Shown here: in pieces, positions 41,504 through 50,500 of the stretch
How the letters are laid out: each line of letters begins with the position of its first letter
Position numbering within the stretch: the stretch's first letter is position 1
Assembly: GCA_965644265.1 (NCBI GenBank)
Contig: OZ286461.1
Span: 44,082,001 to 44,146,000, forward strand
Length of the DNA stretch: 64,000 bases
From: Glycera tridactyla
Lineage: Eukaryota
Reading direction: 5' to 3'
Notes under the pieces: model-generated
The model's database searches: none
What the model was told of the DNA's origin: nothing
Seen by the model: the letters and a program-made list of their open reading frames with translations, nothing else
Translations under genes and position numbers: made by a program

Positions 41504-44500
41504 GTATGAACATTTCTATTTTTCTCCAAATGAGTTCATTACTTTAGTCACCATGAGAGCTTAAGTCTGTCTGTATTCTCAGCTTTAGCAGAACTAAACC
41601 ACATCTCAGATAAGTTGGCTGTAAAGTAAATCTACCAAGTTGCTGGGGTGGATCCTTTCGATGCCAATATGCGGATTTTATGTAGATATTCAGGACTTGA
41701 TCTAGTGCAGAATTACTTGTCTTGGATATTTTTCGGAGTCCCATCATGATTGTTCTGCCAAGGGACATTTTCCATTTGCATCATTTCAGACCTTGAGCTC
41801 TTTCCCCACTAGTTGCTTGTCGCAGTACAATGGCATGAAGTGATGAAACAGTTTTCACGTTGGTCCGTGTTTATGACTTACTGATTTGAATTTCTGTTCT
41901 GATCAATGCACTGTGCTGTGTCCACTATATTGGTGCAATGAAAGAAAATCTTTGCAGTCAGAGAGGAGAAACTTCAGGACATGATGCACTGAGCAGGCGC
42001 ATCCTCTTGACACCTAACCTAGGCTTCCTGTAATCCCTGAGTTTCAATCTGTTGCGTTTGAAAATATAGGGGAAGTTTCTGGAAATCTGGTCACATTTCA
42101 GGAAATTCTGTTTTCAGTCCACTTGCATTGCTGACCAAGCAACTACTTATGCTTGTTTGCCAGAGATTCCACCTGCTATGATTTTTGGGTAGCAACTTCT
42201 CTTTTTTGGCCAAAATACTTGCATTATGAGTGATGCTACTCTGAATAAGTAGCATTTTTTCTTATCCCATTGCAAATACTAGCACTGCTATTATCTTAAA
42301 TTGGCTCTGCCACTATTTTTGTCCATCAGAGGTTGGCGTCTATGGGTAGCTCAATATCTGATTGAATATGTAGTAATATGCTCCATGTAAATGTCTGTCC
42401 AGACTCTGAGCACATCAGCTGTAATGCAGGAAATATCTGGGTTTATTATCCTGATTTGGTCAGTGGACCCTGGAGGGTGGGTGAAAATTTTACAACACCT
42501 GCTTGGATAACACCTTGGAAAAAAGTTTGAAGCCCTTCAGTTTCTTGATAATAGATGCACACACTGACCAGATGATGTGCTACTTCCACTGGAGCATTTG
42601 GCAATGGCTATTCAAGCAAACTGCAAACCTGAGCTGCCTTCACTTGTGAATGTTTTTGCCTTGGTGTCTTGCATGAATGGAGGTGATGATACAGTTTCAC
42701 GTTGGTCCGTGTTTATGAGTACTGATTAGTGTTCCTGTTCTGATCATGATTTTTGCATTTCACTTCAGTCGACATGTTTGACTTGGATGGTACCGTTATC
42801 AATGTCCTTCTTTAGTGATCGAGAGATGCCACATCAGTGTCGTCCTGAAATGACATGGTCCTTGAGAATTGTGTGAAATTACTACGTACAAGCAATCTCT
42901 TGCCTCCCAAATCCGAAAGTATGCTATTCGGATTTCATCCTAAACAGGGTTTGCTCAGACTCAGGAAATCATTACCTATACTGTCCTGGAAAACATGTTT
43001 TTCACTTTATTATTCTGGAAAAACACTGAAATTTTGAGATCTGCACCATGCTCTGGAGATCAGCAAAAACCTAGTAATTTCACTCATTTTTGATGGACGG
43101 TGCACACGGTAGACATCAATAGTTCTGATAGATCTCAAAATGACCACCAAGTTGTGCACAGGAAAAATCGTGATCACCATCATAATGGAGAATTTCAGAA
43201 GAGTAAGCTCAGTGGTTCAGACATACTACCTCTAGTCGCTGATGCTGCACATGTAAAATTACCATTAATTATGAGGCATTCATTTCGAAAACCATGAATT
43301 TATTGGTTGTGTGTGTTCTGGAAATTCTTCATGGCGTACTGGAAATGTTCTGGAATTTTTTTTTCCCACAAGAACCCTGTATGAACCATGCTGAAGAACT
43401 AGTTATTGCCATCCAGCTTCTGTCTTGGTTGTTGGATGGAAGGTATCTTCACTATTCTGCAGGACATCCATAGGAAGTTTGATACACTTGAAAAGAAAAT
43501 GGGTGAGGAATCACCTGAAATCTTGTGGGGGTTTCATGAATCATGATAGATACTTTGATGAAAATGTGGGACCAGTTTCGGTGAATTCATCCAAATTTCC
43601 AAAAAGAAGAATCATTTTGTTTACATCTGCTTGTCTATTCAGTTAGCTAGATCTTTGTCAGGACTCCTACAACAGTGAGTTTTCTTGTTCTTGCTGAGAC
43701 GGACCTCAACAAAGAGTAGTCGTGTAAGGTTGCTCGATTATCCATGGCAGGTACAGTTCAGTCTTGAATAGATTGGCTCATGTTGATTCAAAGGCCTCAG
43801 TCACTGGGAGAACGAAGAAATGTCTTATGTTCAAGCTCATAACCTGCTGATGAAGATTTTTTATTTTGCTGATACCTCTGATGGTTTTATCTGCTTATCA
43901 AATCTGAAGGTTTTGATGCTAACAGATACTTTTCTTCATGTCTGATTATGCATGCTTTTTCATTCATATGCATCTTCAATCACTCTCCCCTTAGTGACCT
44001 TGACAATTTTCACTTGTTTCTCAGGAAATCATTAAACAGTGGAGGGTAGCATAAATAGTACACTCCAAAAACTTATTGTAGTGCATGTGGGATCATGTCA
44101 TAGGTCACAGTCCTATTCACAAGACAGGTGTGCGAGGATGGCTGAAAGTCGACTGAAGAATCACACACTGCCTTCATGGATGAATGAGATCAGGAATATG
44201 CTGCATATTCCTTTGTTACACATTCCCTGTTAGTGAAGAAATTAGTTCCTGTTATTGAATAGAAGTATGAAAAGAAAATCGTTTTTGGGCTGGATGTAAT
44301 CCGATTTGTCTATTCCCAAAGAAGTAGTGGATGAGAAGATTGTTGAGATGCCAACCACTGTGATTCTGCAGTAGCAACTACTCTGGCCAAAATTCTTGCA
44401 TTCCACAAATTCACATGTGGATCTACACTGAAAAAAATCAGGATTTTCTTCATTCCATTGCAAATACTTTGACTGCTACTCTTTAAAACTAGCATTGCTA

Positions 44501-47500: not shown

Positions 47501-50500
47501 ACGCAATATCAACTACCATGTTCTCGATGCTCACACCTGACTTGTGGGCCACCCTACAGGGCGTACAGGAACATTCTTAGCATTCCATCGCAAATACTGA
47601 CACTGCTACTATGTGTCCTTCAAAGGTTGGCATCTGTGGGAAGTTCAAAATCTGGTGCTTTTGTAAGTCCATTTATATGGGTGGTAGATTACATCTGTTA
47701 GTAATTTCACATGTTCATAGAGAAACTGATCAGCCACAAGTAGTTTTTTAAAAAGTTTGGTGATAATTATCCTATCACTAGCTGAGGTATGATGATATAA
47801 TATCACGTTGGTCCGTGTTTATGATTCATTATGATCAAACCTGTTTGTATCTGATCTCAGCACTCTTCTAGGAATCCTGGTGAGATACCTCCATTATTGT
47901 AAGCCATCCCATTCTTAAAAATGAGGGTAGAGGCATCAAATGGAGTGAAATCAAAATTTGTTGCCTGCAGGAGAGAGAACATCTAGCTTTCATTGACCAG
48001 GAAGACCACAAACATGATCCATGGGGTTTATACATGACGTTGAACAAGAAACTTCTCAATTGGTCATTTTGAGATGGCCTGCCCTTGAATATTCTTGATA
48101 GATGAATCAGATTTCAACCATACTATTGTCATAAGTTTGGCTACTAAAGCTGGTCATGTGACAATTGGTCATCATGTATGATCCATGCTCTTTAGCATGC
48201 CATGTTGACCTGACAATAAAACAAATGCATATTGTCGCTCATTGTCTGTTCATTTTTATCTGGTCTCAATGAAGTTGAGGAAAGAGTGGTACAGTGAAAC
48301 CTGTCATGGGAGACCACTCTTTACTGGCTCTTCTCTATTTGACATATTCAAATATACCTCCAATGAGAGACCACTTTTCATTGGCGTTTGGGGCGGTCTC
48401 CCAAGACAGGTTTTATTGTATCAGGTTTGCCCCGGCCTACATCTGTTCATAGACCATTCAAGTTAATCATTAGGTGTGTAGCAGTGAACCTGAATTGTTG
48501 TATCTCACTGGTTGTAGGTGACCGGCAAGTGCGGTAGCGTAGTTGTGCGCTTGATCCCAGCACCCAGAGGAACTGGTATCGTTAGTGCACCAGTACCCAA
48601 GAAGTTGCTTCACATGGCTGGAATTGATGACTGCTACACAAGTGCACGTGGACAAACTGCAACTCTTGGCAACTTCGGTAAGTATTCTGCATCTGTAGTG
48701 TGGAGATGCCTCTCAACTGACCTGGGCGGGTGAATGTCAAATAAGCAGTCAAACTTGCTCAGTGTTCACTCAGTTACGCTAGTGGAATGTTGAATTTTTT
48801 ATATCAGTGAGATCTGCTTGCCGTGCAGATGCATGAGCTATTTGATCCCTTGAAAGTGATATTTGAGTTTTGGTAAGTCTCCGATTTTGGTGGCGGCCTA
48901 GTTATAGGAACCTGTTCACTCTCTCACCAAATCTTTGAATCTCTGGTACTTTAATTGGAAAAACCTACCTTTCGAGCATGCCTGTAATGATGCTGTTTCA
49001 AGACGGGAATGATAACCATGATTCTGAACATTTGAACTGAACAAGCATGCTCTTGAGTTATGTGGGATAGGCTGTAACTGTGCGATAAATCAAGGGTTGA
49101 AAATTTTCATTTTGGAATTAATCAAACCTGCTCTAAAGACCACCCTGAGCTGCGATCGTGATAGTATTTTCAATAGTAAATGACAAGAGACCACCTGTCT
49201 ATAAAGACCACTTTTTAATGCGATCGAAGGCAGTCTTCATAGACATTGTCGACTATTTAAACCCAGTTCAAACGGAGAACAATAATCATTCTCCTACTGT
49301 ATTCGGGTTTCTTAGCCAGCAGCCTTTCTTGAATCGCCATTTTTGTATGTTGTTCAATCTCAATTGGACTTGCCTGCATTCTGTAATTGGTACCAGCCCA
49401 CTCCTAGATCACTGCAGAGTTGCAGGTCAGTTAACAGAATTATGTCTCCCCCCTGATGGGGAGACATATAGAATTTGTATTGTCCGTCTGTCCGTCCGTC
49501 CGTCTGTCCGTCTGTCTGTCACAAAACCTCGTGAGCACGATTGCAGCAAAACTACTCATCCGAATTTGATGAAATTTGGCAGGCATACCCCTTGGGAGGG
49601 TCTAATGAACTGATTAAATTTTGGTCCATGTGACATGATTTTCAAGATCACCAGGGGCAAAAATTTCACTGAAATTTCACCAAAAAGGTACCCTCATTAA
49701 ACTCAGTCTGTATTGTGACCTCTCCGAAATGAACGCATTTCTCATGCCTCTCCATTCATGTTATGTAATATTCTTCGGTCTCTAACAATGCTCTTTTGTC
49801 CTGCTCTGATGACTAGACGTTGATTTCATTTTCCCTCTCTCCTCAAACAAAAGCCCAAACTTAATTAACTGCCCTGTTTGTGTCTGCTCCTTGTTGCTAC
49901 CTGTGGATATCCAATGGCTATTATACTTGGCATATTGGTATATACAGTCGAACCTCCTCTAAAGACCACTTCTCTATAGAGACCACCTCCCTATAAAGAC
50001 CACCCTGGGCTGCGACTGTGGTAGTATTCTCAACAGTGAATGACCTCTGTATAAAGACCACCTCCCTATAAAGGCCACTTTTTGATGTGACCGAAGGCGG
50101 TCCTTATAAAGAGGTTCGACTGTAAGTGCTGTTAGCGATTTGACTGTCATACCCCCCCCCCCCTGTGTTGGTCCACTGGTGTGTTTGTCTCAAAGTTTGT
50201 ATACCTCCTTCCCTAGACTATGGATTTACATCTTGCATTTCAAGGTCACTGAGTGCAAAATGGTTTCCGGACAATGAATTGAGTTTCAGGGGTAGCCTTC
50301 TCAAACTTCTATGAGAGGCTGTACATCTATGGCAACACACCCATTGATTTTTCAATTACTTACAGGGGGGGGGGGGGTTATTGATAATTTGAGTGTGAAA
50401 ATGTATTAGTTTTGTTCATATATTTCACTTTTCTCATTTACTCATCCTGTGACATCATGCACTCAGCGGGGCATTCACACCCATTGAGTGCATCTACAGG

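Follow-up and report, generated by a model that had tools for sequence, protein, structure and literature searches.

A clustered set of box C/D snoRNA units in the introns of RPS2 from Glycera tridactyla

The processing of small nucleolar RNAs (snoRNAs) of the box C/D class from animal introns is known mostly from vertebrates, where each intron holds one snoRNA, set at a constant spacing from the branch point. Other arrangements have been described. PMC3089462 contrasts the one-snoRNA-per-intron layout with "numerous intronic clusters in Drosophila" and cites intronic clusters in rice; the primary reports, as cited in PMC3089462 and PMC2246290, are Huang et al. 2004 and 2005 and Liang et al. 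2002. Among the Drosophila genes for cytoplasmic ribosomal proteins, 27 are snoRNA hosts (PMC2246290), and human genes with several snoRNAs in one intron have been discussed (PMC4233238). Splicing-independent release by endonucleases is carried out by Rnt1 in yeast and XendoU in Xenopus (PMC10557570), and PMC10932220 cites work in which Rnt1, with Nop1, releases yeast U18, and describes how Rnt1 binds an external stem. Here we analyze 64,000 nucleotides (nt) of the Glycera tridactyla genome (assembly GCA_965644265.1, contig OZ286461.1, positions 44,082,001 to 44,146,000 of the forward strand; hereafter the window) and focus on the box C/D units in the introns of RPS2 (uS5), which an earlier note on this DNA had described as an unusual host of several snoRNAs per intron.

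The RPS2 introns contain seven intact and one broken C/D unit, spread over three introns with a maximum of four intact units in one intron (Table 1). Every one of the eight units is intronic and has the orientation of the host, on its sense strand, and introns 1 and 2 of this expressed gene each carry at least two of them. The Drosophila and rice clusters, as far as the citing passages describe them, likewise consist of several, often paralogous, sense-strand snoRNAs per intron without promoters of their own. However, the Drosophila clusters named in that citing text are H/ACA, whereas every unit here is box C/D, with 0.5-1.1-kb spacers and long external helices. In the yeast Rnt1 systems (U18 and polycistronic precursors) an endonuclease separates the units before trimming and an external stem is part of the signal (PMC10932220, PMC10557570); yeast has a single U18 in one short intron, whereas RPS2 holds several units per long intron. 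Human sno-lncRNAs (long noncoding RNAs of the Prader-Willi region and from SNORD49A/B) likewise involve two C/D units per intron, but they are stable long RNAs with snoRNA ends, whereas the units here carry canonical rRNA guides and no such RNA was seen in contigs. Another comparison is with Xenopus L1 (RPL4), the host of U16 and U18: the same families are multicopy in a ribosomal protein gene there and in our material (U18 in this locus, U16 in RPS2 of another genome, L015). The Xenopus L1 copies are presumably one per intron, in contrast to up to four intact units per intron in RPS2. The layout reported in the earlier note is real, but it has known precedents in Drosophila, rice and human and a counterpart in the RPS2 gene of L015: the locus is another case of intronic snoRNA clusters and no new kind of system. 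Its notable traits are that all units are box C/D, that the host is an essential ribosomal protein gene, that the spacers are long and that the external helices are strong.

We consider it somewhat more probable than its negation that RPS2, as a highly expressed host, carries a lineage-specific, tandemly amplified C/D set (four U18-type units, two intact and one dead unit of a family that we call B, and one U21-type unit), whose copies would be mostly functional, would assemble with the aid of their own helices and would be freed by endonucleolytic entry into the intron.

The units were located by scanning with Rfam models at permissive thresholds, by searching for repeats and by aligning the sequences. 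These methods bear out the counts of the earlier note, namely four intact units plus one disrupted unit in intron 1, two in intron 2 and one in intron 3. Its interval for the cluster, 41504-49052, correctly begins at the first base of intron 1 but ends with the last snoRNA and not with the last intron; intron 3 continues to 51119, and up to that position no other C/D unit was found in it beyond 48975-49052. The D box is CUGA in all seven intact units. The C boxes of A1-A4 match the consensus RUGAUGA, while those of B1 and B2 (CUGAUGA) and of the last unit (AUGAUGC) deviate at one position each. Over both strands of the whole window, a strict scan for C box, D box and stem is expected to return 0.66 matches. 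Four copies of the 11-mer U18 guide are present in the 64 kb, always on the + strand and within RPS2 introns; the B guide occurs three times, again only within these introns. Because the strict scan expects 0.66 matches and the U18 guide is confined to these introns, chance is excluded as the source of the set. A C/D-like motif pair at 46187-46287, with a flank duplex of -1.9 kcal/mol and no Rfam match, was rejected.

Family assignments follow from sub-threshold Rfam matches combined with guide identity. The four U18-like units share the D' guide GGUCCGUGUUU with the SNORD18 consensus, and the 22-nt block of guide plus D' is identical across A1-A4; A3 and A4 are 91% identical over 110 nt, short flanks included. 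They differ from Rfam SNORD18 in their D' box (AUGA, not CUGA) and in their scores, as none of the four reaches the gathering cut-off of 41 bits for RF00093, to which A3 comes nearest. The intron 3 unit has the SNORD21 guide in the position of sn668. Its guide equals positions 70-88 of the SNORD21 model at 18 of 19 positions, and its terminal stem comprises 8 bp plus 3 bp (-18.1 kcal/mol). A full-length match to SNORD21 (RF00068) is absent, the match being a local one of 19 nt with 17.3 bits vs 63, and sn668 gives a weak global match of 19.8 bits; both scores lie below the curated cut-offs. The U21 name given to this unit in the earlier note is apt for the guide but not for the layout, as the guide lies in the 5' half before D', as in sn668, while SNORD21 has it in the 3' half. 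The U18 name holds for A1-A4, whose guide is the SNORD18 consensus. Outside both names fall the two remaining intact units and the split unit of intron 1, which form family B, with a 14-nt guide before the D box.

One B copy is interrupted by an 851-nt element that ends in a (CAAA)n tail and is bounded by direct repeats, as a retroposon would be; a tRNA-derived head was looked for in this element and none was found, and a second copy lies at 61561-62272. To judge from its sequence this split copy is dead, and its 5' half shows how decay looks, although its flanks would still pair. Once the insertion is removed, the B copies are spaced 809 and 805 nt from start to start. This near-equal spacing suggests tandem duplication of an ~807-nt unit, followed by divergence of the spacers.

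Table 1. Features of the RPS2 locus in the window and of RPS2 loci in other genomes. Flank duplex, pairing of the 20 nt upstream of the C box with the 20 nt downstream of the D box.
Feature	Position	Strand	Flank duplex (kcal/mol)	Description
RPS2 coding exon 1	41264-41503	+		Translation; mRNA-contig overhang before exon 2 equals the end of exon 1
Intron 1	41504-46771	+		5,268 nt, GT...AG; four intact C/D units and one split unit
A1, U18-like	41835-41906	+	-17.3	SNORD18 32.3 bits; C box GTGATGA, guide GGTCCGTGTTT then D' ATGA, D box CTGA
A2, U18-like	42678-42747	+	-8.7	SNORD18 26.1 bits; boxes and guide intact
B1, family B	43841-43912	+	-13.1	C box CTGATGA, D' CTGA, C' TGATGG, guide TCTGCTTATCAAAT before D box CTGA
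Split B copy			-19.8	
Split B copy, 5' half	44650-44702	+		83% identity to B1
Insertion in split B copy	44703-45553	+		851 nt; (CAAA)n at end; direct repeat TGATGGTTT at both junctions
Split B copy, 3' half	45554-45600	+		95% identity to B1
B2, family B, intact	46306-46376	+	-12.9	395 nt upstream of exon 2
RPS2 exon 2	46772-47053	+		mRNA contigs in four runs, zero differences
Intron 2	47054-48517	+		1,464 nt; two U18-like units
A3, U18-like	47212-47284	+	-13.3	SNORD18 40.3 bits, best Rfam score of all units
A4, U18-like	47784-47858	+	-14.9	SNORD18 34.6 bits
RPS2 exon 3	48518-48677	+		mRNA-contig overhang after exon 2 equals the start of exon 3
Intron 3	48678-51119	+		2,442 nt; one C/D unit close to 5' end
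U21/sn668-like C/D unit	48975-49052	+	-18.1	C box ATGATGC, guide TGTTTCAAGACGGGA before D' ATGA, D box CTGA
RPS2 exon 4	51120-51301	+		Stop codon TAA at 51299-51301
RPS2 of L001-L004				One snR61/U38-like unit, intron 2; 41.8 bits vs 45
RPS2 of L015	6014-10034			Five U16-type units, intron 3 alone (~4 kb)

The differences between paralogs are unevenly distributed. Between A1 and A2, none of 26 box and guide columns has changed, compared with 8 of 37 free columns (P=0.01); between A3 and A4 the figures are 0/26 and 7/40 (P=0.024), and the 16 stem columns are unchanged as well. The pair A1/A3 differs at one of 27 constrained columns vs 19 of 42 free ones (P=1e-4). The pair B1/B2, with 0/25 constrained and 2/36 free changes, is not informative. 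Similarity between paralogs covers the unit and ~7-46 nt of flank, and the remaining hundreds of spacer bases are unalignable. Together with the strong external stems described below, these differences suggest that most copies are under selection as self-contained processing units. They argue strongly that introns 1 and 2 each contain at least one live U18 lineage, and moderately against one copy of each pair being dead.

Most units are enclosed by external helices. Background duplexes, computed from 20-mers of the window at the same spacing, have a mean of -5.3 kcal/mol (standard deviation 2.95) and a first percentile of -13.9 kcal/mol. Seven of the eight units have flank duplexes between -12.9 and -19.8 kcal/mol, and six of the seven intact units between -12.9 and -18.1 kcal/mol, A2 being the exception. 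For comparison, short introns with a lone snoRNA were taken from two other organisms, and there the flank duplexes reach only -8.6 and -6.9 kcal/mol. Distances to the next 3' splice site range from 395 to 4,870 nt across the units. According to Hirose and Steitz, a position at ~70 nt reportedly favours splicing-coupled assembly in mammals, and the units here are far from it.

Based on these features, we propose the following route. The intron would be transcribed with the host, or excised from the host transcript, and a long helix formed by each unit's own flanks would juxtapose its C and D boxes. Because each unit would fold by its own helix, small nucleolar ribonucleoproteins (snoRNPs) could assemble at any point of a long intron, even at a great distance from the 3' splice site. 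Exonucleases would then gain entry through endonucleolytic cuts in the spacers of 500-1,100 nt and would trim to each snoRNP. Endonucleolytic separation of the copies is our best inference for the release step. In a more speculative version, which we think unlikely, the 15-19-bp flank helices would themselves be the sites for a double-strand-specific or snoRNP-recruited endonuclease that excises every unit; this would be an animal counterpart of the yeast Rnt1/plant polycistron pathway and would have allowed C/D units to be amplified in tandem within introns of ribosomal protein genes in this lineage (this genome and L015).

The host is RPS2, on the + strand, with four coding exons. The RNA data consist of assembled Logan contigs from four runs of four studies, made from poly(A) or unknown libraries and unable to show 70-nt RNAs or their ends; they were matched to 41850-47849, which leaves the last 9 nt of A4, exon 3 and the U21-like unit outside. 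Each run holds an ~900-nt contig that matches 46772-47056 exactly, at depths from 83 to 5,171 across the four runs, and whose overhangs belong to exon 1 before the match and to exon 3 after it. Since these contigs run from exon 1 through exon 2 to exon 3 in all four runs, RPS2 is expressed and exon 2 is spliced as read, with a 3' boundary that the trinucleotide GTG leaves ambiguous as far as 47056.

Several points weigh against the account of mostly functional, endonucleolytically separated copies. At Rfam gathering thresholds the whole window gives zero matches. No endonuclease site or motif was identified. The constraint test has limited power against one dead copy in each pair: for the three pairs, the probability of seeing zero constrained-column changes is, by a Poisson estimate, ~0.06, 0.03-0.10 and 0.3, and gene conversion between copies could imitate constraint. 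A2 has the lowest SNORD18 score and the weakest external stem, which is displaced 6 nt from the C box. Finally, we infer the production of a mature snoRNA by each copy from its sequence features.

One alternative is that just one copy per intron or family matures and the others are silent or decaying tandem duplicates, which would need no special processing. In its favour, one B copy is demonstrably dead (split, with its 5' half at 83% identity), A2 has the weakest stem and the lowest score, and the contigs, which could not show mature snoRNAs, give no RNA support for individual copies. Unexpressed copies are moreover common in animal annotations, ~65% of the annotated human C/D copies being unexpressed (PMC12309372). 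We nevertheless regard this alternative as unlikely, as the differences between paralogs spare boxes, guide and stems, and the units are still 87-93% identical while their spacers have diverged past alignment. The estimates for the three pairs multiply to ~5e-4 as the joint chance of one dead copy in every pair, assuming independence and no gene conversion. Strong terminal and external stems, which characterize expressed snoRNAs (PMC12309372), are also retained by six of the seven intact units.

If exonucleases halted at the first and last snoRNP of an intron, snoRNA-ended RNAs of ~647 nt (47212-47858) and of ~4.5 kb (intron 1) would result, with the internal copies trapped. Human two-snoRNA introns yield such RNAs (PMC4233238, PMC4234469), and the end units of each intron here have intact boxes and strong stems, but we consider this outcome quite unlikely: internal A2 and B1 show the constraint seen in the outer ones, a pattern difficult to reconcile with copies that are never released, and depth is zero in all four runs at 47250-47449, inside the ~650-nt species that the earlier note had proposed, with low depth in other parts of the introns. 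No snoRNA-ended RNA was present in the contigs of the four runs, although poly(A) selection or assembly could hide such RNAs. It is very unlikely, in our estimate, that cryptic or alternative splicing places each unit in its own sub-intron, with the aberrant RNAs removed by nonsense-mediated decay, as described for human multi-snoRNA hosts (PMC4233238). The contigs of the four runs contained no cryptic exon junctions and no joints linking exon 2 to intron sequence; the joints listed all lie within or come from the retroposon repeat at ~45100-45500, and the only abundant form is exon 1-exon 2-exon 3, though decay-prone isoforms would be rare in contigs. The contig results thus lend no support to the long-RNA and cryptic-splice explanations and are weak evidence against them. 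Transcription of each unit from its own promoter, independently of RPS2, has a parallel in some invertebrate snoRNAs (32.6% of snoRNA loci in Bombyx are intergenic; PMC3089462). It is extremely improbable here, because the paralogs share no sequence beyond 14 nt upstream and all eight units are intronic on the sense strand.

Some further features of the host region were observed. A pyrimidine-rich tract at 41235-41263, ending in TAG two bases before the ATG, resembles a 3' splice site; RPS2 probably has an untranslated first exon and a further intron upstream of exon 1, and no C/D unit was seen in 40500-41260. The last three codons of RPS2, the stop codon and ~150 nt downstream have been copied into intron 2 (48138-48291 vs 51292-51447, 93.6% identity), and a further 365-nt stretch downstream of RPS2 into intron 3 (49498-49862 vs 51485-51867, 84.6% identity). 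An ~140-nt repeat directly upstream of exon 2 (46600-46750) has copies at 3185, 18392, 21676, 34059 and 49969. In each of the four runs, contig depth over this repeat and over the (CAAA)n element at 44703-45553 is between thousands and 200,000; both belong to very abundant transcribed families. An "LTPDLW" pseudo-exon at 47530 was dismissed as a chance occurrence, its DNA having no similarity to exon 4.

Relatives of the locus were sought by peptide searches with exons 2 and 4, followed by contig look-ups. Those found are distant: exon DNA is 78-86% identical, introns are unalignable and intron positions are mostly the same. This comparison of RPS2 introns, which the earlier note had suggested, recovered a multi-copy layout in L015 but a single unit in L001-L004; no C/D unit was detected in the RPS2 introns of L005, L016, L017 and L018, and none was found by motif scan in L006-L008. 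In L015, three of the units are SNORD16 copies (59.2, 55.8 and 54.5 bits, cut-off 45) and two are diverged and U16-like; the three SNORD16 copies have flank helices of -13 to -20 kcal/mol, and their similarity is limited to ~115-122 nt. With this locus and L015 taken together, at least two lineages have amplified C/D units in tandem in one RPS2 intron, using different families. On these comparisons the multi-unit arrangement is lineage-specific rather than ancestral. Scanning metagenomes for the U18 guide block returned one other organism only, with a single U18-like unit. That unit, with D' AUGA, lies at L013:405-482 (and in L012), in an ~300-nt intron of an S-adenosylmethionine synthetase gene of a metagenomic eukaryote. 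The vertebrate host of U18 is RPL4. As U18 resides in RPS2 here, in S-adenosylmethionine synthetase elsewhere and in RPL4 in vertebrates, it has changed its host repeatedly.

The U18 and U21-type guides point to neighbouring targets in the large-subunit (LSU) rRNA, with complementarity judged from the known targets of the families and from the conserved LSU sequence. TGTTT forms both the end of the U18 guide and the start of the U21-type guide, and because of this shared overlap both are predicted to bind one continuous LSU stretch, which is the conserved sequence recognized by the common primer LR3. By the fifth-nucleotide rule, methylation is predicted at the bracketed A in GAAAC[A]CGG and at a G ten bases upstream, in CCC[G]UCUUG. 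The earlier note's description of the U18 and U21 targets as adjacent LSU sites is fair, since the predicted sites are 10 nt apart; by the same prediction, U18 and U21-type snoRNPs could not occupy one rRNA molecule together. The B guide would pair with LSU UUUGGUAAGCAGA, including one G-U pair. This sequence presumably lies in the part of LSU complementary to primer LR6 and adjoins the snR61/U38 site, and methylation is predicted at a G a few bases upstream of that site, the first G in UUU[G]GUAAGC. In a distant relative, RPS2 intron 2 contains a genuine unit of the snR61-like kind (L001:10538-10614), which has a guide that pairs with the adjoining AGCAGAACUGG.

The RPS2 genes of this locus and of L015 show that animals other than vertebrates can accommodate four or five C/D units, each with a long flanking helix, in a single long intron within an essential gene. 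Should each intron yield just one copy, the locus would be a commonplace trace of duplication and decay. Should every copy be produced, it would offer a natural system for studying the release of internal units from an intron, and a model for snoRNA dosage by copy number and for the movement of snoRNAs between host genes. The most interesting implication would be an animal pathway that cuts snoRNA units out of long introns.

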